This document shows positions 5,084 to 49,646 of a stretch of 64,000 bases of DNA, one piece after another. Source of the stretch: Rhodosorus marinus CCMP1338 (lineage: Eukaryota > Plantae > Rhodophyta); NCBI GenBank assembly GCA_029953675.1, contig JAMWBK010000002.1, positions 310,001 through 374,000 on the forward strand, written 5' to 3'. How positions within the stretch are numbered: the stretch's first letter is position 1; each line of letters begins with the position of its first letter. The notes under the pieces are model-generated. The model saw nothing but the letters and a program-made list of their open reading frames with translations. It searched no databases and was not told the DNA's origin. Both the position numbers and the translations under genes were made by a program.

Positions 5084-5653
5084 ACCGAAATATCCACTCA
5101 GCCTGCGAGCAGAGCGACGGAAACTCTAACACGCCCCGATCAGCTACCAGACATCACGTCAGCCTTTATCCAATCAATAAGCAATATTACCAAGTACAGA
5201 TAACCCAGTTTCGATGCGCTCAATCCGCAAGCGCTGTTCAACTCTGTTCTATAACAGACCGCACGGCCTTCAGCTTGGAGTCAAGAAGACGCAATTCCAC
5301 AGCATATCGAGAAGACCTATTAACGATAAGATCCCTTTTCCTCTCAACCACCAACCACAATCCGAATCTCGTCCTGGGAAAGCCTTCGATACCGTTGTCA
5401 TTCCTGACTTCAAAGAAACGAAAGGATAAGGACTCTGGAGGACGCTACCCCGGACAGAAAACAAATGGCTCACAAGCGTCTTCAAACTTTGTTTGTTTTT
5501 GATCAATCACGTCAACTTAGACAGGGCTTCAACTGCGGCGGTCGCGAGAGATTAAACTTACTTAGCCCGCCCCCCCCCCCGCCCCTTAAGCCTCACTAAT
5601 TCCATTTACGAAAAGAACTTTAGAACAAATAAACTGTTCCACAGCTCCACAAT

Positions 5654-5711
5654 CCATTATCCATTAAGCTCCATATATAACCCCATTATCCATTAAGCTC
5701 CATATATAAAC
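5654..5711. repeat. 29-bp tandem duplication CCATTATCCATTAAGCTCCATATATAA(C/A)C in AT-rich intergenic island
   Basis: Two adjacent copies at 5654-5682 and 5683-5711. Confidence 0.95.
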
Positions 5712-6672
5712 CCTACGACAATATATAACTCAATCGCATCCATCGCGCAATACAAATGTATTCACGTCCGTACTAATTAATTAAGCCCAAAAAATATATA
5801 TATACAACAACCCCTTGTAAAAACACGTTTCCAAACAAACATAAATAATATATTAATAAAATACACTATTCAATCCAAAACGATAAGAAGTTTCTACCCC
5901 CTCCCCCCTAGACCACATCCATTTTCTAATGGGTGGGGTACCTCAAGCTTACACATCTATTTTATATATTGGTACTAATTTATCTGTACTTGGTAATATT
6001 GCTTATTGATTGGATAAAGGCTGACGTTCAGTCAAAATTAAACCGTTAAAAATAGAATTTATAAAGTTTAGTTTATAATTTTGGGGGTTATTGCCTGACT
6101 TAAAAGTTGCGTTTTTTTGGAAGGGTGGGTTGGAGCTTATGAGGTGAGGGGGGGGGGGGCGTGAGATATATCTTCTGCAAATATGGAATCGTATTTTAGT
6201 GTTTTTATTGAATAAAAACGTGATTTCTCGACGAACTAAGATACGGTATCTCGGCAAGGGGGGTAGATTCTAGGTGACGCTTATGATCGCATATAAATTT
6301 TTAAAGATAGTAAATATAAAATTTATTTACCGGAATAGAGCTAATTTTATGGTTTATTTGGGGCATTTTGGATTTGTCGTGGAAGGAAGATTTTGGAGAT
6401 GAAATTTGAGTTAGTGTCACTCTTTGGGGTTGAGGTTTGGGCTTACGGCTGGAAGACAGTTCGATGGGTTGGGGTACTTAAGGGGAGTATGGAGGAGTGG
6501 GTTTGAAGATGGCCTAGTAGATGGTCAGCACCCTTTTTTGGTTTTACCCTGTTAGATTCTTTGTTAGCAAGACTTTGGAGCTTTTTAGTTTGGAAGGTCT
6601 TCAGCTTGCTCTGAGATTTAAGACGGTGGTTTGGCGTGACGGTGTTTTTTTTTTTTTTGAGATATCTGAATC

Positions 6673-9061: not shown

Positions 9062-9470
9062 TTCTGCTATGAGCAGTTTGGTGAGAAAGCTCCCTTGCAA
9101 GCAAGAAGCCAAGTTTCCACATCACACCTACTGCTTGCTCAGCAAAGCCATCCAAGGAGGCAGTATTTCATCAGCGGACAAAAGCGAGCGAGCCTGAAGA
9201 AGAGGAGACTTTTTTCCTTGAGCATTCGGTGAGGAAAGCCTTCTGTCCAGCAAGGAGCCACCAGCTTGTCAAAGCACATCTACTGCTTAGCTCAGCAAAG
9301 CCATCCAAGAGAGGCATTATTACTCCAGCAGCGGACAAAGGCGAACCTGAAGGAGAGGAGACTTTCTTCTTTGAAGATTCGGTGAGGAAATCCTTCTGTC
9401 CAGGCAAGAAGCCCAAAGATGTCTGAAGAGGAAGATGAGATTTTCTTCTATAAGAATTTGGTCAGGAAGA
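9062..9470 (+). repeat. Degenerate ~150-bp tandem repeat (about 3 copies) with a frame-broken ORF
   Basis: ATTCGGTGAGGAAA.CCTTCTGTCCAG at 9224 and 9377 (period 153); GCTCAGCAAAGCCATCCAAG twice; more diverged copies near 9071 and 9430-9470. Confidence 0.8.
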
Positions 9471-9639: not shown

Positions 9640-11373
9640 ATGGAGAGTGAAATAGAATACTCGCTTCTTAAAGTTCCTCTTGAAGATGCCATGAGGCAGT
9701 TTCGGAACGTTAAGAAAGAAGTGGATAGGAGGATGGAGGACGTGTCATTGGAGCTTGAAAAGAATGACGAGGTTTCTGTTGACCAAGTTTCAAAGTAAGT
9801 GGGAGGATTCTTTCACCGGTGCTTGCTGTTTGGTTTGGATGCTTTTGTCGTGACGGCTTTTCTGGGGGGTGGGTGGGGATTGATCTGATTTTGTCTTGTT
9901 GTTTTTCGTTGTTCTTGAAGGGCGATTTCTGATGCTACAGCCAAGCTCAAGGAGTTGCAAAAGTACATGGAAAAGGCGAATGAGGAAGAGCGTGAAGCAC
10001 TTTCTCGTCTGGTGTTGCGTTTCAATCATCTGGAGCAGAGGAAGGAGCTGGATGAGATGAAGCTTGTTAAGTCGGACTTTAACAACGAAAGCCAGGCAAA
10101 GTTCACTGCTGAAAGGCAGTCAGTGATTCCCACGCGCGTCAAGGATATCGATAACCTCTGGACATGGAATGAGGTTCGAGCTGAGCGTTTCATAGCGGAC
10201 TTCATGTTGAGATCGGGTTATACCGACTCTGCGCAGAAACTGGTCGAGACGTTCAAGCTTCAGGAACTAGTCGACGAGAACGTGATACGCGATTCTAGAA
10301 TGGTAAGAACGCAGACGTGTCTTTTCCTTAGGACGTGGTCTTGTCAATCCGGCGGAAACTTCATGCTCACTCGTCCAGACCTTGTCCTGTGCTCGTCTGT
10401 TGCTCAGCTGGCGACTACCTTGGAACGAAAGGACTGCACTGAAGCAATCAAGTGGAGCTATGAGAACAGAAAAAGACTGGAGAAGATTGGATCTGATCTA
10501 CTATTGAGGTTGAGGGTACAAGAGTTTGTCGAGCTTCGAAGGAGCGGGAAGATAACTGAAGCTATAGAGTACGCCAGAGCTCATATGGCGCCTGTGGCGG
10601 AGGACGCAATGAACCTTGTAAGTTGCGAGCCCTAGTTCGCTGTTTCCTTTTGTTCTGGGGTTTACTGTATTACATCCTGTTCTCTCAGGTCCCCAAGGTC
10701 ATGGGATTGCTCGCGTTTCCTCCTGATACCAAGTGCTCCCCATATGCAGAGCTCTACGCTGAGGAGAGATGGGCTGAGCTAATACAGATATTTCAGAGCT
10801 CCTTCTTCGAGCTTCACGGCCTGACCACTAAACCCCTGATCGAGGTCGCTATGATGGTTTGTATCGTACAATGACATATATGACCTGTCGCTGGGGCCAC
10901 CCAGAGGCGCTCTCTCACACTGAATACTGTCTCCCCTCTTGCCGGATTAGATTGGGATGTCGGCGAGGAAGACCAAAGCCTGCTTCCAAGATGAAACCAA
11001 GAACATAGACTGCCCAACTTGCAGCAAGCCATTCAACGAAATGTCATCCCAGCTACCGTTTTGTCAGAACACTCACTCCAAGTTGATATGTTCAATAACC
11101 GGCAAGGTAAGGCGCGGATTTTCTGCTGTCCGCTCGAGAGGGGGAAACGTCTTTCAAACCGGTAAGGTGAAGCTCACTCATTTCGCGCAATTTGCCAATC
11201 TAAAATCGTAGGTTATGAACGAAAACAACCCCCCTTTGGTGCTGGGCAACGGGAACGTGTATAGTGAGACAGGGTTGAACAGTATCAGTCATGAGGGAAC
11301 CGTTATCGACCCAAGGACAGGAGAATCCTTCCCGTACCCTTCTCCAGACATTGCGAAGGCGTATGTTCTCTGA
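9640..11373 (+). CDS. MAEA: MAEA/Gid9/Fyv10, CTLH (GID) E3 ubiquitin ligase subunit, multi-exon
   Basis: MESEIEYSLLKVPLEDAMRQFR; LisH (RFIADFMLRSGYTDSAQKL); CTLH (EAIKWSYENRKRLEKIGSDLLLRLRVQEFVELRR); CRA; degenerate RING CPTC..LPFCQNTHSKLICSITG; NNPPLVLGNGNVYS; stop 11371-11373. Confidence 0.93.
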
Positions 11374-23061: not shown

Positions 23062-24458
23062 ACTCCGAACTTCCTCTAAGCAAGCTAGTGGTCCACAATC
23101 TTGAGAGAAGAGATCTCAAGCTCGGTGAAGATTGGATTTTGCCCGCAAAAGGGTGCAACTTGCTAATCTCAGTTTGTGCGTTCCATTCATCTCCTCATCA
23201 CCTTCACTTTCGAAAAGGGAGCTGGCTAGAGGCTGTCCCTCGATTTTGAAGCCAGAGTGACGTTGTGTTCTCCAGAGATGATGCATAGATATGAGTCAGC
23301 CCGACTTGTGTGAATCACTGAAGCGTTGTATTTGTCTACAAGGGACAAACTTTAGCTCCGATGAAGGTACAAACAGGCATGAGCGGGGTGAAGTCTCCGC
23401 TTGAGTTTCTCCAGCGTTCGAGATAATGGAGGTTACCAGAGTCAATTTCTACTCGATCTTCGTCTGGTGTATTGTACCCTAGGGGTTGATCCCTCCCAAT
23501 TCGGTATCTTCGCTGTCCATGGCACTTGACTATATATGATTTCAGTCTCCTTGACGGTTCACACCAGACGGCTGCGTTATCTGGCCTTGCAGTTCCTTAC
23601 GCTACGAACTTTGGAACTGTGGGAATGATGATGGGTACGGCTTTTTATCTGTGAATGGTCTGTGTTGGAAGAGGCTGATGCGACCGCTTCAGACTTTTCC
23701 TCCGGCGTTTCCCTGTTCAGTTTGCTCATCGGTCAGAAAAAAAAAAAGCCTTTCTACCTGGATTACCGCGAAACCGACGAACTGCCTTTTTCGGTGCAGA
23801 AGAGCGTTTGAATCAGAGCGTATCAGAATCTGATGGACTGTGCCATATAAAAACTAAAAACTAGTGCCTGCGTCATTGCTCAAAGCCATCAACGAGCTAT
23901 CCGGATACTGACCCAGCCTTCCAGAATCCACATCGACCAGCGCAATCAGATCCCTAAATCCCTAAATAGCCCTAGCAAGCCACAGGGGCTTTCTGGGCCG
24001 CCGCTGACATCGTTGTACAAAACTCAACCTCACAGCTTTACTACTTGAGCAAGCACTTTCAACAGCGGTCTCGATGTCGCCAGCCTCCACAAGTGACTGT
24101 ACAAATCAGCAACAACATGAATATATACGAAGTGTCTATCTAACTCGCCATAACTGACTTTGGGCAGTAGGTCAGCCCTAAAGAGCTCTTCCTACCGATA
24201 TCGCTCTGTCCGCCATTGTCGTTGCGGATCCCTAGACCGTGCCTTCCATCGTCTCTGCTGCTTCAAACCCATCAAAAACCTCCATCTTGGTTAAGTCAGT
24301 GACGTCGTCACCAATTGCTGCCAACAAGTATCCTGGAAAAGGCGGCAATAGGTACCGGAAGCGTGTTTCTTCTTGCTCCTCATTTTGCGTTCTCAAGATG
24401 CACTAGCTGCTCCCACAGTCTTCAACAAAAGGAAGTTCTCTCAGACAGGCTCCGGGTC

Positions 24459-25578
24459 CTACTTCGATGGTGGCGGATATGCCGGATACCCTCCTTGACC
24501 AGGCGGTGGTGCTGTTGGCCCCGGAGGTGGAGCTTGGCCAGGAGGCGGAGCCCCGGCTCCGGGCGGTTGTTGACCAGGTGGGGCTCCGTAGTATCCGCTT
24601 TGCGCGGGTGGCTGTTGACCGAAATATCCGCTCTGCTGCGGGGGTGCTTGTCCATATCCTCCTTGACCGGGGGGTGGTGGTCCATAGCCCCCCTGGCCCG
24701 GAGGTGGCGGTCCATATCCTCCCTGGCCCGGAGGCGGTTGTCCGTATCCTCCCTGGCCCGGAGGTGGTTGTCCATATCCTCCCTGACCTGGAGGCGCTGG
24801 CCCGTAACCCCCCTGCCCCGGAGGCGCATAACCACCTGCCGGCGGTACCCCGGGAGGAGGGTAGTACCCTCCTGGAGGTGGATAGCCACCTGGTGCGGGT
24901 GGATATCCCCCGCCCTGCGGCGGGTATCCAGCTTGCGGTGGGTATCCATAGGGTGCTTGACCTGGTTGCATTGGGTATCCGCCATATCCTGGAACTCCTG
25001 CTTTCGGTTCTGGTGTTCGAGAAGCACAAAAAAATGAATATCTTCGTTTAGCATATCATCCCGTACGAAAAGAAATATGGTAACAACAGTACCTTTCGCC
25101 CTCTTGTGGAGGACAACTTCAAGCCTAATCTCCCCTCCTGCCTTTCCCTTTTCCGTTCTCATCGCGTACCTAAAATTAATGAGAAGGCTCGTTAGACGTT
25201 GTACAACAGGCAGGCAGCTAGAATTTCTCTGAGCTTGGCGAAACAATCGCACCATTGGTTAACGGAGGCAGATTGCTTCCCAGGCTGGTTCAAATGGTTC
25301 AGATCTATATCTGTATAGGCGATCAGCCTGTCCTTTCCAATATTCTTATCCTTGACGTCGACTCTCAAATGCAAATGCGCCATCCCCGACTCCGGAACAT
25401 CGAACGAGAAATTCTGGTTCCATCTCGCCTTGGTTCCAGCCTCGTCCTTGACGGTCGTCATAACAACCCGATCAGTATACTTCATCCGAATCTCTACATA
25501 CGGATCTTGCCTTGAGAACCTTTCCTTATCAGGCATATGCCGAGCCTCAACAACGCAAACATCCATCCTCCCCGACAT
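24459..25578 (-). CDS. C2-domain protein with a long Pro/Gly/Tyr/Gln-rich tail, 3 exons
   Basis: MSGRMDVCVVEARHMPDKERFSRQDPYVEI..GTKARWNQNFSF..LRVDVKDKN..DRLIA (C2) |WYAMRTEKGKAGGEIRLEV| then a PPPGQGGYG-repeat tail ending PPPSK*. Confidence 0.9.
24651..24830 (-). repeat. Six 30-bp coding repeats encoding xPPGQGGYG(P/Q)
   Basis: Units start at 24651, 24681, 24711, 24741, 24771 and 24801. Confidence 0.95.
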
Positions 25579-26864: not shown

Positions 26865-27840
26865 TCAGGGCGGAGGGTAGTAACCAGACGGCGGAGGTGG
26901 ATACTGACCACCCTGCGCTGGATACCCTCCTTGACTAGGCGGCGGTGCTGTTTGTCCTGGAGGTGGATACTGACCACCATGTGCTGGATAACCTCCTTGA
27001 CCAGGTGGTGGTGCTGCATGTCCTGGAGGTAGAGCTTGCCCTGGATGCGGGGGGTATGCGGTGGGTATACAGTGTGCGGTGGGTATGCAGTATGCGGTGG
27101 GTATGCAGCATGCGGTGCGTATCCGGTTGGTGGTGAATATCCGTATGGTACTGGTTCTGGGTGTCCTGGTGACGCTCCAGCTCGTGGATCTTGAGGTTAG
27201 AATGGAAAAGACTTCTATCAGATAGCACGACAGCACTACCCTAAACCAACTGAATGGCAGCGAGTACTTACCATCATACTTCTTGCGCAGAGTGATTTCA
27301 ATAACCCCAGACTAATGCTGAATAAGAGCTAGTTCCACCCTACGACTCAAGTAGTAGTTAAAATACCTACGAGTAAGTACAATGCGTTTAGGGAAAACAT
27401 GGCGTCACGCACCTCTGAGTGAGATACTGTGATGCGTTGATTAAAAGAGAGAGCGTGAGAGAGAGTAAGTAACGCTGGACATGCCCTTTTAGCCTCCGCA
27501 CAAAACAAATTCCAGGGGTATGTTGTCTTGCGATTGGTTTTGCAAACTGTAGTGCACGATCTCCTTACCGTCTGAAAGTTGAATGCTGAGATGCGGTACT
27601 GAGCTGGCAATCAACCTCGCCCCAGCGCGGCTCAAGCGTGCTGCGCCAAACATCCCGTAGCGTTTGTTCGGCTGACTGAAAAGCCAGTGCTGAGGTGTGG
27701 GATCTGCTGAACCGATTTCAGCAGTCGTGATGTTGGGATTAGCTAGGCAAACTGTCTTAATGTCCTTCTCCCCTTCTGAAGGATGCACGCTGAGTAGCCC
27801 GGTCCATGCCGTAAAAACCCATGCAGAACTGCAAATCAAC
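26865..27840 (-). pseudogene. Diverged tandem paralog of the C2/Pro-rich gene, frameshifted as assembled
   Basis: Same exon layout (..SGVIEITLRKKYD G|intron|DPRAGASPG vs GGEIRLEVVLHKRAK G|intron|EPKAGVPG) and same PPPGQGGYP tail; frame changes at the G6 run 27049-27054; in-frame TAG at 27312-27314; 5' end uncertain. Confidence 0.65.
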
Positions 27841-34726: not shown

Positions 34727-36197
34727 CTCAGAGAGTTTTCAAGGACCCGAAAATTGCCCAAACACCCTTCCACTGCCCAGCGAAAGGTCCAACCAACGTT
34801 CCCAAAACCACCTCAAAACCTCTTTCAACGCTACAAACAAAGAGCTAAACCCCGCCTCCCCAAAAAACTATCTCAGCTAGCACTAGAACGTGAGACCAGT
34901 ACCGCTAGGGCAGTTCCGTTAAAAGAACCCTCAACTCAAACCTCCTTCCTTGTCAAAGACAGCACAGAGTATATATGAAGCAACCTCGTCCTCGTCCCAA
35001 AAAGAGAATGCCTGCTCCATATTTGGAGAAAACCCCGAACCCCTCCTACTGAAAACCGTCAAATAATCTTCCACTTCATAATTTCGATAAAAATACAGTT
35101 TAAATTCCCAAAGACACGCAAGAATTCCTCCCTCCCCCCTCTCTCCTCCTTTCAATTCTACTATTTCCATGACGTAGATCTTCCTGACCATGAAGCGGCT
35201 CTTGCAGACGACTTTCGTTCTACGAATGATTCTTCCAGGCCCAAAAATGCAAACAAGGCGAATGTTCCATCTCCCGAATAGTGAATAGTGAAGAGCACAG
35301 CGGCCAAAGCAAGGAGGGCCAGTGTTCCTCTTTAGAGGAAAAAGTTGAGAATGTAATCAATCGATATACGTGAAAACTGATTGATGGAATGAACTCGAAA
35401 GTAGGGGGGAAAACTATTTTGGAAAATTGAGTTTGCGGAGATCTGAATTTCAGGCTATGATTCTCGTCGGTTGATCTTGACGGGTCTTTGAAGCGGTTGG
35501 CCGTCTGTCGGTCCGTGCTGCCCTAGTGATGATGCGAGTGGTTCTTCTGTCTACGAAAATGGTACCTGAATAGTAGATTTTCTCTGTCCGCGTACGGACC
35601 CCGCCATTATGCCATGTTAACTCCTGCTATTGAGAACCTTGATCATCCCAGAGCCTGCTCTATCGCCAAACTACGTGTCTACGTTTTTGCCTCGCTATTC
35701 AGACGCGATCACTAAGAGGATCGTGTCTGAATCGAACCCAGAATGAGCTTCTGCGACCTGAACCGGCTTATCTGGTCGAGCGGATTGACCACCAGAAAAT
35801 CCGCGTATCGGACTCTAGATTGCTCTTCCAAGTTCCGCGCAGATCGGAACTTGATTGACATGAACGCGAATTAGTCTTCTCGGATCATGATTTCAATCTG
35901 GCTCATCAGAATCAGCAGAATGTCCTAACAACTTCCAGACCATCATCGCGCTAGTTACCGCTATGGTCCTCCCGTGGCCCGGTTCCCAAATCAGTGCCCA
36001 TCAATGTTTTGTAGTGCCAAATCACTTCTCATCTAAACGACTTTTTGAGGAAGAATTGTTCATAGCTGCTGGGTTTTGGCTGAGGACTGGTCAAGGCTAG
36101 GTGGGGGCTAGTGCTCTAATTCAGTTCTACGGGACCGATTCTTAATATTAAATCTGGAACTTAAGGATTCAAAAACGTCTGTGCGTGTGTTGTCCAA

Positions 36198-41011: not shown

Positions 41012-42001
41012 CTACTCCGCGGCAGGCACAGTAGTACGAATGTAAGGCTTTCCGGAGGGCAGATCGACAGTCTTGAACCCTGGGAATTTCTCTTCTGCAG
41101 CTTCGCTGCTGACTGATGGCAAAATGACACATTCCCTGTTTCGACGCGGAAGGATAAGATAAGAGTTAGCCACGAGATCGGGTTTGAACAAGCCCTTGGC
41201 ATGATGATAGCTTACTCTCCTTGCATCCAATCGCATGGAGTTGCCAGGCTTTGAGTGGCAGTGACCTGCAAGGAATCGATGACCCGAATAATCTCCGTGA
41301 AGTTCCTTCCTGTGCTAGCTGGGTAGAGAAGACTGAGCTTGAGCTTCTTATCAGGGCCAATGATGAATACAGCTCGAACTGTCATCGCCATTCCCTTCGC
41401 GTCCACTGGTCCACCCTGCAGGAGAAAGCACAGATCTTCAGCCTTCAATTCGCTTGTCGCACAGTTAACACAGTTAAACGGGTTGGTCATACCGATGCTG
41501 GAATCATGCCGAGGGCCTTGGCAAGAACACGAGTTGGATCAGCGATGATCGGATAGCCGACATCGGTGTTGGCGTAGCTGTTGATGTCCGGAATCCACTC
41601 TCGGTGGCTGGCGACGTCGTTGCAGGATACAGCAAGAACTTTGACCTATCGGAAAGAGTAGGAGGTACGAGCATTAGTACCAGGGTATGAAATTTGTAAA
41701 GCCAGGGATCCGCAGCTTACGTTGCGTTTCTCGAATTCTGGCACGAGCTGAGATAGACGTCCGAGCTCAGTGGTGCACACGGGGGTAAAATCAGCAGGAT
41801 GAGAACAGAGCATCGCCCAACTATCGCCGATCCACTTATGGAAAGACGGGATCGATCCAGTCTATTACAAAACAATAAAACAACAAGCACAAACATTTTC
41901 AGTTACTGAGCTCCTTCACTCAACCCGAAAATAGGCCCCGCAGACTACCATACCGAAGTCTCACAAGAAAAGTCAGGAAGCGTCTCCCCAAGCAACACCA
42001 T
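41012..42001 (-). CDS. PRDX6: 1-Cys peroxiredoxin (Prdx6 family), multi-exon
   Basis: MVLLGETLPDF; WAMLCSHPADFTPVCTTELG; TVRAVFIIGPDKKLKLSLLYPASTGRNFTEIIRVIDSLQ; ATPCDW; LPSGKPYIR. Confidence 0.96.
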
Positions 42002-42630
42002 CGTTGAGCAGCAGAAATTAAACAAACAAACGCAGCAGAACCCAAACGACACAAAAAAAAATAAAAACACAGACGATCAAACAGACACACACCAGAATCT
42101 TCAAAATCTAACGTCCCAGTAACTCATCCAGCTACCCCTGCCTCCATCCCCCATCCTCATCCCCCCGCCCCCCTGCCCCTCCCTTTCCCTATATACCCTT
42201 TCCTACCCAATCCCCTAAACCTATCCGCCACGAGCACAAAACCCCACAATTTCTCACCCTTCCTGTCATACGTCATGAAAGCAAACTCAAACACCCAAAA
42301 ATGCCAACTTTCCAAGAAAAATACAACAAATCTACAATTATTGTTGAAAAATCAAACATATAATATCTCAATCCTCTTCAAAATTTCCCCAAAACAATTT
42401 CTACCTTCGGTGTACAATAGGATATTCTCCAATTCTATGATACTCCTCAGAAACAACAGATTTTCAAGAGTCTGTCAATCCAGCCAACCCTTTTTTTGAT
42501 TGCTTTGCGAGAGAGGAAGTGGTCTCCCAGAACTTCCAACTCTCGCACTACTTAGAGTCAAATGGCGCGCTCGGGTGGGTGTGGGTGTCTTAGGAGGGGG
42601 AAAAGGGAATCGCAAGTGTGAGTGTGTGGG

Positions 42631-42773
42631 CTCTGTGGTTTACTGGAAGGTACTGTCTGACTCTATGGTTTACTGGAGGTTTTACTGGAAAAGTGAAAGC
42701 CGCGAGGTGGATCCTAATGAGAGGGAAAGGGGTGTAGGCAAGGGTAGGTGTTGCTCTGTGGTTTACTGGAAGG
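42631..42773. repeat. Three copies of a 20-bp motif CTCT(G/A)TGGTTTACTGGA(A)GG in a G-rich tract
   Basis: Copies at 42631, 42661 and 42754; partial TTTACTGGAA at 42681; degenerate copy near 42985-43016. Confidence 0.85.
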
Positions 42774-43350
42774 CGCTGTAAGGCTGGCTAGTTCCGGAGG
42801 CCGCGCTCTCTGCGATCTTTCTAGTGTAGACCTCCAAACAACAGATTTTTTTTAATGGTATACCAATGCTACAAAATTTCACCGGCTGAAAGATAGCACT
42901 TCATTTGAGCGGATGCGTGCTAGGAGAGGGAAACTGGAATCGAATGTGTGTGTATGTGTGGCTCCCTCTCGTATAAAGCAAGGCTCTGTAAGGTTTGGCT
43001 TAGCTCTGGAAGGCGCGTTCTCTGCAGCCCTTCCTGCGTAGTACCTAATTCGCGGACCTTGGTCACGGATGAAAGCTATCTGGCTACCTTCCAGCAGAAC
43101 CCACGCCCGGAAAATTAAATTCAAATAAAATCCACCGAACGTCCCCTTTTTATTCGTTGCCGTCTTCCGTCAGCTAAATATCATTAGCAGGCGGCATCGT
43201 TCGTAACCAATCAAACAATAGTTCCTAAAGAACGTATATAATACTTAACAAAACAAGCAAACGGCACAGTACAACTCCTTCTTAGCTAAAAATATAAAAA
43301 CATACATTAATCAATCAGAAAAAGATGCTTAGAATTAGGGTTGTCTAGGT

Positions 43351-43476
43351 TGTCATAAAACGTCCGATAATTGTTTTTTTGCAATGGCCATACAATATAT
43401 TGAATATACAAAGAAAAATAACTTTTAAGCCAATATTTGTTTGCGCGTCCTTTTTGTTATCGGACGTTTTAGGACA
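43351..43476. mobile_element. Foldback/MITE-like module 1 with 20-bp terminal inverted repeats (TGTCATAAAACGTCCGATAA)
   Basis: 43351-43370 pairs with 43457-43476 at 19/20; AT-rich interior; no target-site duplication seen. Confidence 0.55.
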
Positions 43477-44182
43477 AAACTATTTAGATTGAATACAGTC
43501 GTTTTTTGTTAAATATTGATTTATGTGCATATTATTTATGAAAACTTGGTTTAGGCTGTTGCAGTCAGTGTGGGAATTGCTAGGGGCTTATTTTCTTCGC
43601 TTTTTTGTCTTCCAACCGATTGCTAAGAGGGAGTGGGAGGTGGGCGGGGGGGGCGAGTGGGACGTTGCCTGCCTTCTTTACATTTTCTCTACCGGTTACA
43701 AACTGACTGCTAGTTTAGTTCTAATTGGGACGAAGGTTTCTCTTCAAATGGAGATATATGTAGTTCCTTTTTCTCGGAGAACCCTGTTCCAGAGCTCTAG
43801 TCTATCTGTGTTCTTGGTGGTATTCATCTTTTCAGCGTCAGCGTCCCCTTTTAACCACCACCACTGAACTGAGCGTTCACTATTAGTCTACGCGTGGCAA
43901 TCATTATTTTCATGGCCTCTCCTATCTCTTGTGGGAAATCGCCCTCCCCTTATCGGCGAGGTAAGCAACAGCGACATATTAGAATAACGACAGATACTGT
44001 AACCGGATCTGAAAGGCAGCTGAATTTCTCCGAAAACCCTGGATTTTTGATCTTGCTGGTGATAGAAACTCTATCCAAAGTTGACCGCTACGAGATCGGT
44101 CTTAATCCCCCAATATTTGGCGTACATTGCTCAGGGATCCATATAGAATACCTGCAAGCTTACAATCGGCGCTTCGAATCAT

Positions 44183-44660
44183 AGGAAACCTCCGAGACTG
44201 GCCCTTCCTCCCCAGCGATCTCACCCCGTGCGATAAACACCCACCCAGTCGCAGTAAACTGATCGAGGACGGAGAGCTTCCGGATCCCATGGAGGAACTC
44301 CACACTCCGTGAGATCTCACTGAAGAATAATTTCTGCAACCTACTTTTCCGGACCTCCACTTCCAGCTTCTACCTTTTGCACAACCACACAACGGGCGGC
44401 ACTACCTAAATACCGCCCTCTGATCAACACCGCTGGAAGCATCCAGCTGGAATGTCGATCATAGGGCTATCAATCCGCGGGTTTACTGACAGCCTTTGGC
44501 TACACGCGTTCCCACGGAAATACGATCAGCAGTTCTTATCTTCTCACTACGCAATATGTCAAATTCCACTGGATCAGTCTTGGCATCTTGGCCCTATAGC
44601 TTACTGACCACAACTCCCTTGCCCACACCAAAGCCTGCTCGCCATCGCTCAATCGAACCC
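44183..44660 (-). repeat. Left arm of a ~1.3-kb imperfect palindrome; inverted copy of the LRR gene 5' region
   Basis: Reverse complement of 45029-45461; exon-equivalent 44245-44369 differs from 45274-45398 at 9 of 125 nt with no indels; ~40-bp insertion near 44595-44632. Confidence 0.92.
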
Positions 44661-44739
44661 CATCCGAACGGGCGCGCGATAGGAATGAGTGATATCAACA
44701 TTTAGTACAAATGTACAACGTGTTACCTATAACTAGGAT

Positions 44740-44966
44740 TGTCATATTTCGTCCGATAAAGAATCTTAGTACAAGACGCACTAGTACATATCATAGAATA
44801 AACAAAGAAAATTGGAGTTCGGGCCACGAAAACTTTTGAAAAACTCTGTCTAAATAAGCAGTCCGTAATTAGGTATTTTTCGAAAGTTTTTCATTCTCTC
44901 ATGCTCGAAGTTTCTTCGTTTATGTGATATTATGCGAAGAAATGCTTTATCGGACGTTTTATGACA
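44740..44966. mobile_element. Foldback/MITE-like module 2 with the same TIR family, inside the palindrome spacer
   Basis: 44740-44761 pairs with 44945-44966 at 19/22; 44947-44966 is the exact reverse complement of 43351-43370; internal inverted repeat near 44828-44843/44877-44892. Confidence 0.55.
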
Positions 44967-45028
44967 CATCGCGCCTATATCTGAGAGTGTGAGACGATAG
45001 CTCAATAGCTAGCTTCTCCGACCCATCG

Positions 45029-45461
45029 GTTCCATAGAGCGATGGCGAGGAGGCCAAGATGCCAAGATTGATCGAGTGGAATTTGGCGTATCGTGTAGTC
45101 AGAAGATAAGAACTGCTGGTCGTTTCCGTGTGAACGCGTGGAGCCAAAGACTGTCAGTAAACCCACGGATTGATAGCCCTCTGATTGGCATTCAAGCTGC
45201 ATGCTTCCAGCGGTGTTGATCAGAGGGCGGTATTTAGGTAGTGCTGCAAGTTGTGTAACCGTGTAGAAGGTAGAAGCTGGAAGTGGAGATCCGGAAAAGT
45301 AGATTGCAGAAATTATTCTTCGGTGAGATCTCACGAAGTGTGGAGTTTCTCAATGGGATCCAGAAGCTCTCCGTCCTCGACCTGTTTACTGCGACTGGGT
45401 GGGTTGTTTGTTCCTAGGGGTGTGATCGCTGGGGAGGAAGCGGCAGTCTCAGAGGTTTCCT
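45029..45461 (+). repeat. Right arm of the palindrome, overlapping the LRR gene 5' end
   Basis: Inverted counterpart of 44183-44660. Confidence 0.92.
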
Positions 45462-46715
45462 CTTAGCAAAACAGGTTGGCAACTTCTGCTCGTTTGCTTG
45501 TATAGTCTTTGGCAACGTGGACAAAGGGCGCGCAAGCCATTTCAAGTTTCCTGGGGAGGTCGAATGGACGCTTCACAATTGTTCGATACTCTGAAAAGCT
45601 TTGACCAGGCCGAAGAGGGGGCGCCAGCGCATCCAGAGTACGTGAGGTGACTTGCAGGCCGTCATTAAGATGCTCTGAAATTTGATAACTGCTGACGAAC
45701 TTCGTATTTTGATTTCAACAGCCCAGAGCCCGACTTCCGTGCTCGAATATTTTCCGCTCGTAGCGACGGAACGAATCGTCTGGATCTCAGTAATCTGGAT
45801 TTGTCGGATGCATCTCTGTGCACTTTACTAGATGCGATTGGGAGTGTTGAAAAGCATGTGCAGGTCGTTGACATGTCAATGAATTTTCTCACGGGCTCCC
45901 CTCAAGACAACCCCGGATGTGAAGCTGGAACCGGATTTGCCAATAAGTTTCCAGATGTTCAGTCCTTGGATCTCTCCGGGAATAGCTTAACTTCTATTCC
46001 AGGGTTCGTGACGGCCTTTCGGAACCTCAAGGTAGGTTTGCAGCGTCATTGAAAGCGATGTGAACATCGTGAATCGGAGGAGTCGCATACACACTCCAGT
46101 CCTCTAAGCACTTCCGGGGTCACCCAAACGATCATGCGGGAACAATGCCAGAGGCAGTATACTGGAGCCTACTACTACTCCAAAGCTACTGGAGTTGCCA
46201 ACCCGCTCGTTGGTCAGTTTTGGATAAACTGCGTTCCTAACAAACCGCTGTCGGTATACTGTAGGAGATTGACGTTTCAGATAACAGCTCCTTGGCAATT
46301 TTCGATACCTCAGTGCTTCCGAAGAGCGTCCGCCACGTCTACGCAAGAAATTGTGCTCTTACAAAGTTTCCTGAGCCGCTCGATGCTCTGCCGGGGACCT
46401 CTGTACTACAGCTTTCCGGGAACAGAATCTGTACTGTGCCTGGGGATATCGGTGCGTTCCAAGAGAGTTCTCCTTCACGCACTGCACCCGTCGTCATATC
46501 TGACCAACATCAATCGTACAGGAGAGCTGGAGAACCTAGTGTACCTTAACATAAGCGACAATGAGATAGAAAATCTCCCTGATGAGGTTGCCGAAGCGGA
46601 TCAACTAAGAGCGCTGGTTTTGTATCGAAATCGACGGCAGTATGGGTACTCCACAGATCTGAACGAGTTCTTTAGCTCCCGCGATGCTCTAAGGAGTGAT
46701 CAACCAGCCCTCTGA
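45274..46715 (+). CDS. Leucine-rich-repeat protein, multi-exon, start uncertain (45274 exon or ATG 45564)
   Basis: RLDLSNLDLSD, VQVVDMSMNFLTG, VQSLDLSGNSLTSIPG, VLQLSGNRICTVPGDI|GELENLVYLNISDNEIENLPDEV, LRALVLYRN. Confidence 0.8.
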
Positions 46716-46830: not shown

Positions 46831-49646
46831 TCATTCTGTCCTGAAAAAACCATTACTCAGCTCGACTAACCAATGCTTCTCGATCTCGAGAGCAGTTCGG
46901 ACGTAGCTCCTAGTAGTCAGTATTAGTTCATGAAATATAATTAGAGCCGGCCTCTTCCGGAGTCCACGGAGGCAGGAGGACGGGTGAATATCAACTTCGA
47001 CACCACCGGTAAGCCCCCTCGTGCTGCCATAAGCTACGTATTTTTTGTCCTCTGAGCGTAAGTACGCGGCGTTACGAAAGTAACCGGCGACGAGGCTCAT
47101 CCGCACAGCATCTAGGAGATCACCTTCAAGCTCCCTTTCGTCGACACCGACTGCATTAACACCGCCAAGCAAGTCTTCGATCTGCTTCCTGATGTTCTGA
47201 GCTGCGAGCATACTCCTTTTCCAGGACCGAACAGAGGAAGGGTCCAAGTCCATTAGAAGCGCAAGCACCTTCAGTGACCATGCAGCTCAAGAAATTCCAA
47301 AGGAACTCAAAAAAGGAGTGTGCCTCGTGCTAACCTGACATTGAGGAAATATTTCCTGCAAAATTGTGATCTGTTCTCTGATTCAAGCTTTTCAAAAGAT
47401 TTGTAGGCGAAGTACAAGCTAATGTGGTCCCCGTACGGTGAGGCAAACTTTTTCCTGGACCCTGCAGCTTCGTCCCGTTTCCCTCTTGGGGAAAGAAAGG
47501 GAGACTGCGAAGCAGTTGACCTCAGTTCAGATCCCCGAGCAGCTCCCGCTCAGTTTGGTTCGCTACCCCTTACCTCAACAGTTAGCATTGCAGCCAAAGT
47601 AAGCATCTGTGGGAGGCAATTAGACCTCTTGGCTTCTAAAGTCGACCTAGCCAGCATCGGGGGTAGAGGCAAGGAGCTCATGGTCTTTCCTAATTCGGTA
47701 AGTCCCATCTGCTCATCTACAGCCGACAATGAAAACAAAAGCTCAAGCGCATTGGCGACAGCCTTTTTAGGAGGGGGATCAATGAATTCGAATTTGAACG
47801 GGTTTCCTAAAGGAGAAAATGGACATAGAATGGAGCGCAGAATTCAGCGGCCGGAAACTGGTGGCACCGTAAAGGGAAAGTTGCAGAGAAACGTGTACGT
47901 ACCTATTCCCATCGCCAGGAGGTGAAGGATTGCAGAAGCAAGATCGCAGCGAAGAATTTCCGGAATTGGATGATCTTCCATTTTGTGGTAGTCGTCCTCA
48001 ACATATAGCCGGAAACACTTCCCTGAGTACCGAGAAACGTCAGACTTTGAATTTTTAGGGTCCAAGTTGGTGTTGACTCGAATAGCAAGAAGAATTTGAG
48101 GAATCCAGACCTGGTGACTCCCTCCCCGCGCGACCAGCCCTTTGACGAGCTTGGCTTTTAGATACAGGACCCACGCGCAGAATATCTGCTCCTGTTCTCA
48201 GATTGACAGTTCTTGATTTCGCTACGCCCGTGTCAATTACATATTTTACATTCCTTATGGTGATGCTGGTTTCCGCAACGTTTGTCGCGAACATGACCTT
48301 TAGTACAAGTAAAAGCGCACATGTCAGTTTCGCCAACGTATGTACCCGCCTTCACGAGTACCCACCTTTCTGCTGTGATGTCTTTGTCCAGGTGGAAGAG
48401 GTTCTATGGCCGCCATCTGCTCATCGGACGGCAGTGCAGCGTAAAGAGGCCTGGCAACAAGCGTAGCCAACTTGTGGCCGTTAGCACGCAACTTCGTTAT
48501 TCGACTTTCTAGTATGCTTATCGCAGCATCGATTTCCTCCTGCCCAGTCAAGAATACTAGGATATCTCCCGGCATCGATTCGTCCGTGTGCACCTGCCCC
48601 AAAGAAGAACCAACCCGACTGGTGAGCAGCGGTTGGACACCAGCTCCTATTGTCCACGAATTATACCTGCAACGTGGCAGTGATTGCTCCATCAAGGTAG
48701 TCGCTCACTGGTTCACCAGCGAACATCATTTCTATTGGAAACGTACGCCCAGGTACAGTTACCACTTCGACAATGGAGCCCTTGTTGTAAAACCTGGCGC
48801 AAGAGGCACATTCTAATAAACGACAAACACGGCAGAGCAAAAAACAGTTCACGGAACATACTTCCTCAATCCATCAATATCGGGTGTCGCGGACATTACA
48901 ATTAGTTTCATTGAACCTCTTCGAACTGCCAGAGCCTGTTTGGATATGCCTAGGAGAACGTCTGTGCTTATCGATCTCTCGTGGACCTCATCGATTACAA
49001 CGACGGCTATATACAGCCACTTCAATCAGATAGGCTGTTGACTCCGCTTACAGAACAACTGAATTTCGCACGTGATGCGTACCATAATTAGATAAGACTT
49101 GGTCCTCGAGCGCTTCACGCATGAGGATTCCGTCAGTCGCATACTTGAGCCTGGTTCTGTGGGTTGTACAGTCATCGAATCTGACAGCGTAGCTCACTTC
49201 ATCGCCAAGGCGGCATCCACGTTCAGTAGCGACCCTACTGGCTACGGACATCGCTGCTACTCTTCGAGGTTGAGTGACTGCAACAAGCTTCCCTTTCAAG
49301 CCCCAGTCATCGTCCAGGATCATTTGCGGAACCTGGACGCGCACGACAATGCATTCAGACCTTCAAACAGTAGCTTCTGCTTGTTTCCAAGTCCAGGGCG
49401 AGGCTGCAATTCAAGCGAATGAACGAACAGACCAAACCCCTAAATGAGCATAGAAATCTATACTAAAGGCGACGGACTAACCTGAGTAGATTTGCCGCTA
49501 CCAGTATCCCCGACGAGTATCAGCACATCGCTCCTCGCAAAAGCTCTAAGGATTTTGCTGCGTGCAAACTGAACCGGTAACTTTCCCTTTCGATCGCGAT
49601 GGCCATCATTCCTATCTGAGCCCTCGAGAACTCGTTTTTGTCTCAT
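46831..49646 (-). CDS. DEAH/RHA RNA helicase, DHX33/Prh1-like, multi-exon
   Basis: GDTGSGKSTQ; TQPRRVAAMSVASRVA; YATDGILMRE; IDEVHERS; MSAT; DILVFLTGQEEID; FATNVAETSITI; QRAGRAGR; HA2/OB-fold tail (IHPSSCL..IIFHELILTTRSY). Confidence 0.93.

Follow-up and report, generated by a model that had tools for sequence, protein, structure and literature searches.

The question raised by this locus is whether a large palindrome lying in front of an LRR gene of the unicellular red alga Rhodosorus marinus is a head-to-head copy of the beginning of that gene, or a duplication of the non-coding DNA that precedes it. The window, i.e. the whole stretch that was analyzed, comprises 64 kb of nuclear DNA from strain CCMP1338 (assembly GCA_029953675.1, contig JAMWBK010000002.1, approximately positions 310,001–374,000), and the annotated locus around the LRR gene NDN08_007436 (21 kb) is identical to positions 35564–56715 of the window. 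The assembly is ONT-based and contains 31.2 Mb and 8,392 genes, predicted with BRAKER trained by RNA-seq mapping (PMC10250338). The palindrome is located in an intergenic region of 3,562 bp (42002–45563) between a 1-Cys peroxiredoxin gene (41012–42001, - strand, according to the annotation) and the LRR gene (+ strand), which are divergently transcribed around it; a DEAH helicase gene (- strand) is the next one after the LRR gene. Between the peroxiredoxin gene and the LRR gene, the RNA-seq-trained predictor placed no further gene, and the longer open frames of the interval 42002–45563 gave no Pfam matches. The same intergenic region contains a C-rich and a G-rich tract (42161–42184 and 43628–43651) that are 88% complementary across 24 nt at a distance of 1.4 kb, as well as, within 42590–42940, the short dispersed motifs TTAGGAGGGGGAAAAGGGAAT and GCTCTGTGGTTTACTGGAAGG, each present three times; a fourth copy of TTAGGAGGGGGAAAAGGGAAT is found at 47767–47787.

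The wider window is ordinary gene-dense DNA that encodes an aminotransferase, a CTLH protein, a beta-lactamase-fold protein, an FtsH-like AAA protease and an RRP5-like S1 protein. Directly upstream of the CTLH-domain ORF (9955–10635), a 153-nt unit is repeated 1.9 times with 85% identity (9123–9413). GC-rich tandem arrays at 24639–24824 and 26893–27122, with periods of 30/60, 66 and 18 nt and units such as CCTCCCTGGCCCGGAGGTGG, are situated inside long ORFs that overlap on both strands (24315–25255) and probably encode a Pro/Gly-rich repeat protein. At the left end of the window, a perfect 48-nt inverted repeat (5156–5203 and 5980–6027) encloses an AT-rich non-coding segment of 872 bp (5156–6027) with an internal 29-nt tandem repeat (5654–5713), a C-run and no obvious TSD; this segment looks like a young non-autonomous TIR transposon.

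Arms and spacer of the inverted repeat

A repeat search identified four inverted blocks that tile positions 44183–44659 against 45028–45461, which agrees within 1 nt with the limits of the inverted copies proposed in the initial annotation. The left arm (44183–44659, 477 nt, - strand) is an inverted copy of the LRR upstream DNA that points leftwards to the peroxiredoxin gene, and the right arm (45028–45461, 434 nt, + strand) continues directly into the 5' flank of the LRR gene; it presumably consists of promoter or 5'UTR DNA. Gapped local alignment of the core (44183–44593 vs. 45052–45461) yields 365 matches, 44 mismatches and 3 gap columns, corresponding to 89% identity over 412 columns. The E value of the arm-to-arm BLAST alignment is 6e-151, and the palindrome is the largest repeat of the 64-kb window, in which neither BLAST nor the repeat search found a third copy or a fragment of an arm. 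A 43-mer taken from the arm has no match in the GTDB genomes, a collection that does not include this alga. The GC content of the arms is 51–53%, compared with 48% for the window.

The overall divergence of the arms is 10.8% (K2P 0.117). The substitutions, 27 transitions and 17 transversions, show no directional bias, which rules out a RIP-like or deamination-driven divergence. Three indels separate the arms: one of 1 nt at 44239, one of 2 nt at 44520–44521, and a segment of 39 nt (44594–44632) that the alignment reveals in the left arm only, reflecting either an insertion there or a deletion in the right arm. Reading frames of the arms other than the one considered in the next section are interrupted by these indels. 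The longest perfect run shared by the arms is 44 nt, which by our own estimate is not unusual at a divergence of 10.8%, and a conserved regulatory core in the arms is not supported. The value of about 7% previously given for the divergence of the arms is valid for a stretch of 125 nt within them and too low for the arms as a whole. The reasoning for which that value had been used, namely that divergence argues against a misassembly, is nevertheless sound. Inverted chimeras occur in long-read data and the assembly is ONT-based, such that a chimeric palindromic nanopore read might have been collapsed into the contig; palindromes of this kind, however, are near-perfect and have no spacer, whereas the one described here has 44 differing sites, three indels and a unique spacer of 368 nt. 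Because of the 11% divergence and the 39-nt indel, we assign an almost negligible probability to an assembly artefact.

The arms are separated by this single-copy spacer (44660–45027), the central part of which is occupied by a foldback element described below. Its two remaining parts (44660–44739 and 44967–45027) are not complementary to each other beyond chance, as their best local score of 14 compares with a mean of 12.5 for shuffled sequences and was equaled or exceeded in 153 of 500 shuffles. A weak and degenerate inverted match (8/11) adjoins the inner ends of the arms, which have since diverged by 11%. The possibility that the palindrome was once continuous through its center, and that a MITE was inserted into a perfect palindrome, is ruled out by the non-complementary spacer flanks. 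On the outer side, the homology of the arms ends sharply at 44183 and 45461: comparison of 43480–44182 (reverse-complemented) with 45462–46300 gives nothing better than shuffled sequences do. No direct repeat (TSD) is present at these outer ends, where the flanking sequence AATCAT precedes AGGAAACC on the left and CTTAGC follows GGTTTCCT on the right. Structured RNAs and tRNAs are ruled out for the arms and the spacer by Rfam and ARAGORN, since the former returned over this region only two sub-threshold miRNA-hairpin matches, both within the MITE and well short of the gathering scores (E 0.19 and 0.34), and the latter found no tRNA in the arms or the spacer.

Relation of the arms to the LRR gene

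NDN08_007436 (P0001; 45564–46715, + strand) consists of four coding exons that encode 254 residues with matches to the Pfam families LRR_8, LRR_4 and LRR_1, and it lies outside the duplication. It is 98% identical to a gene model built by hand from the window. Its splice sites differ slightly from a naive longest-exon reading (the donor GA/GTACGT at about 45637, and ATCG/GTGCGT in the third intron), and it is with the annotated sites that two R. marinus transcriptome-derived orthologues (P0002 and P0003, 75–77% identical) agree. Both orthologues, which are the only close relatives of the LRR protein and are recorded as transcriptome proteins with no contig, also begin at the same Met-Asp as NDN08_007436. 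The corresponding ATG at 45564 is located 102 nt past the end of the right arm at 45461, and the intervening sequence (45462–45563, + strand) is unique according to the alignment and to tblastn. The frame of this start codon is open back to a stop at 45423–45425 and contains no earlier ATG. When P0001 was used as the query in tblastn, no LRR coding relic was detected to the left of the left arm. We therefore do not retain the interpretation of the palindrome as a duplicate of the start of the LRR gene, as the coding sequence begins outside the arm, the orthologues share its initial Met, and the duplication does not extend past the arms. The truncated paralog that was expected to start from the left arm would have nothing to encode, because there is no LRR coding relic beyond that arm. 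An ancestral palindrome that once reached outward into the LRR coding sequence is likewise ruled out by the unrelated outer flanks and the absence of a relic in tblastn.

The case for a coding duplication had been built on a putative exon of 125 nt. Only one 125-nt segment of the arms has AG/GT borders in both copies together with nine differences, which allows its identification as 45274–45398 (+ strand), with its counterpart at 44245–44369 (- strand). The counts originally reported for this stretch were correct: it differs at nine sites, four of them synonymous, contains no indel, and keeps the flanking AG and GT in both arms. The open frame, on the other hand, has five non-synonymous differences, and a ratio of 4:5 is, as far as can be judged from so short a sequence, neutral-like. 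The divergence is 7.2% in this stretch vs. 12.3% elsewhere in the arm, a difference that, on so few sites, is not significant (Fisher p = 0.16). The frame contains no ATG and is immediately preceded by a stop. No ORF of the arms has a Pfam match at E<=1, and the six-frame translation of 45020–45565 (concatenated), when compared with 5.8 billion proteins, has zero matches at E<=10. When the 47-aa frame was searched exhaustively with phmmer in 1.84 billion cluster representatives, one marginal match was obtained (E 4e-4); it is a repeat-inflated artefact that owes its score to an internal repeat present in three identical copies in a protein other than an LRR protein.

It could still be argued that the arms carry a genuine 125-nt LRR exon, and that the left arm is the start of a truncated paralogue arranged head-to-head with the LRR gene around a shared central promoter. 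The frame is open in both arms between conserved AG/GT borders, and several downstream AG sites could join it in frame to the LRR coding sequence. However, the frame lacks an ATG and follows directly upon a stop, its substitutions are neutral-like, it has neither a Pfam LRR signal nor a credible homologue, the annotation and the orthologues place the start at Met 45564, and no coding relic exists past the left arm. A coding exon or truncated paralogue was rejected on the grounds of the missing ATG, the orthologue starts and the lack of a homologue and of a relic, and we consider this reading extremely improbable. As judged from their sequence, the arms encode no protein.

MITE-like elements and the probable origin of the duplication

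The presence of a foldback element inside the spacer, termed module 2, is confirmed by our analysis. It extends from 44740 to 44966 (227 nt, 34% GC) and is a MITE-like element that has TIRs of 20–25 nt and no coding capacity. A shorter copy of the same family, module 1 (43351–43476, 126 nt, 31% GC), has the TIR in common with it, as well as subterminal sequence of about 30 nt. The 20-nt TIR of the two modules, TGTCATAAAACGTCCGATAA, has four matches vs. 0.00 expected by chance, and both modules fold into hairpins. No consistent direct repeat that could represent a target-site duplication flanks both module 1 and module 2. In the JGI metagenomes, a collection that does not include this alga, the TIR 20-mer has a single match, with no inverted partner in the 600 nt around it, which we take for chance. 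The two modules resemble known MITEs in being short, AT-rich, non-coding and hairpin-forming with TIRs of 20–25 nt, and in occurring as two related copies 1.3 kb apart; they differ from them in having neither a definable target-site duplication nor an assigned superfamily or autonomous parent. Repeats make up 15% of the R. marinus genome, where classified DNA transposons account for only 0.03% and unclassified repeats for 4% (PMC10250338). The family to which modules 1 and 2 belong appears to be undescribed.

The position of the MITE between the arms had led to the proposal that its hairpin primed a template switch, or that a transposition of reversed ends took place. Such an origin is unsupported, because it predicts that the arms abut the MITE termini, whereas 80 and 61 nt of unique, non-complementary DNA lie between the arms and the element. 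We consider it probable, if far from certain, that the locus is instead a locus-specific, old (K2P about 0.12), decaying and non-coding inverted segmental duplication of the LRR upstream DNA with a nested MITE. Approximately 0.45 kb directly upstream of NDN08_007436, presumably promoter or 5'-leader DNA ending 102 nt before the ATG, would have been copied in reverse a few hundred bases further upstream. As to the route, the geometry of the locus, i.e. two inverted arms, a non-palindromic spacer and sharp outer ends, suggests either that a broken or stalled DNA end folded back and acted as a primer, or that the template was switched within a fork. The copies would then have undergone neutral drift up to their present K2P of about 0.12, with the 27 transitions, 17 transversions and three indels counted above, and the MITE may have been inserted into the spacer later or may already have been there. 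The duplication is most likely what remains of an error in DNA repair or replication.

Comparison with fold-back and template-switch inverted duplications from other organisms is instructive in this respect. A single-copy spacer, which represents the fold-back loop, is a hallmark of fold-back inverted duplications (PMC3907307; PMC10622511, PMC10766183). The inverted arms and the non-duplicated spacer of the Rhodosorus locus, the contiguity of one arm with the parental locus, and the sharp ends are features in common with human inv-dup CNVs, yeast foldback inversions and ODIRA (PMC3907307, PMC10622511, PMC10766183). On the other hand, the arms measure 0.45 kb here as compared with kb to Mb in those systems, there is neither a terminal deletion nor a triplication, and the event is interstitial and so old that the diagnostic inverted microhomology of 2–8 bp at the junction of spacer and arm is no longer readable.

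A different origin would follow if the arms were themselves an interspersed repeat, either as the long termini of a non-autonomous, foldback-type transposon of 1.28 kb that later received the MITE, or as two unclassified repeats inserted side by side in opposite orientations. Foldback or long-TIR transposons, such as FB and Galileo of Drosophila, have long inverted termini around a short non-coding middle. The Rhodosorus locus shares this anatomy, its inverted termini (434–477 nt) flanking a short non-coding middle; it differs from FB and Galileo by the lack of a TSD, of other copies in the window and of subrepeats in the arms, and by the fact that one arm runs straight into the 5' flank of a gene. 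To our knowledge, the arm termini are unlike those of any known transposon superfamily. MITE-like elements have been active in the region of the palindrome, another TIR-bounded unit is present at 5156–6027, and a repeat family that includes the arms could be represented among the 6,757 'unclassified' interspersed fragments that constitute 4% of the genome (PMC10250338). Nevertheless, no TSD is found at 44182/44183 and 45461/45462, no third copy or fragment occurs in 64 kb, and no annotated protein among the 5.8 billion searched resembles any frame of the arms. We regard a mobile origin of the arms as unlikely, while giving it appreciable weight.

The slightly higher GC content of the arms (51–53% vs. 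48%) also bears on the idea that they are a NUMT, composed of two minicircle non-coding fragments end-joined in inverted orientation. R. marinus has an unusual abundance of NUMTs, most of which are derived from non-coding minicircle DNA (PMC10250338). They represent, however, a small fraction of the genome, and we give very little credence to this origin as compared with an inverted duplication of the LRR upstream DNA.

Possible hairpin RNA, present-day effect and significance of the locus

Irrespective of how the palindrome arose, a transcript running through both arms could fold back on itself. The RNA predicted from such a read-through forms 401 arm-to-arm base pairs with an energy of -846 kcal/mol. 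If the locus were an hpRNA locus, this imperfect dsRNA of about 400 bp would be processed into siRNAs directed at the promoter or 5' leader of the LRR gene, which would be silenced at the transcriptional or post-transcriptional level. Plants are known to have loci that were born as inverted duplicates of their targets: the young MIR genes of Arabidopsis, Mu killer of maize and PAI1–PAI4 of Arabidopsis are inverted duplicates of target-gene sequence. In flies, the hpRNAs of Drosophila arise in the same manner from inverted duplication of target-gene sequence (PMC10317233), and DCL and AGO are encoded in the genomes of some red algae at least (PMC12026948); we found no literature on the RNAi machinery of Rhodosorus. 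The palindrome is similar to these hpRNA and proto-miRNA loci in being an inverted duplicate beside its source gene that could form a long dsRNA; in contrast, the known cases duplicate a transcribed and usually coding part of the target, whereas the duplication at the Rhodosorus locus is confined to upstream DNA. Since there is no overlap between the arms and the coding sequence, the LRR mRNA would be targetable only if an arm were part of an unannotated 5'UTR.

Several observations stand against such a role in spite of the extensive predicted stem. The arms have no sequence in common with the LRR coding region as annotated, no gene or transcript is annotated over them, and their 11% divergence shows no sign of maintenance, whereas hpRNA stems under selection usually remain well paired. 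We thus consider silencing of the LRR gene by siRNAs from the arms to be improbable. The more specific view of the palindrome as a young-to-middle-aged hpRNA locus, whose dsRNA, transcribed for example from the spacer with its MITE or by read-through, would give rise to small RNAs that modulate or silence the neighboring LRR gene, is decidedly improbable as well. At present the inverted duplication most likely has no effect, or at most a mild cis-regulatory one, through the second, leftward-facing copy of LRR upstream elements that it places in the divergent intergenic region.

As such, the palindrome is ordinary, one more small and decaying inverted duplication, accompanied by a MITE, in a gene-dense part of an algal genome of 31 Mb. 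At the same time, it provides a red algal example, and a clean one, of an inverted duplication with a spacer, and the locus documents an uncharacterised MITE family in R. marinus, a species whose DNA transposons are almost entirely unclassified. Moreover, it offers a ready test locus for the question of whether long genomic inverted repeats trigger small RNAs or chromatin silencing in the Stylonematophyceae. If the hairpin interpretation were true, the locus would represent a naturally occurring hairpin directed at a promoter, in a lineage whose endogenous RNAi has hardly been explored.
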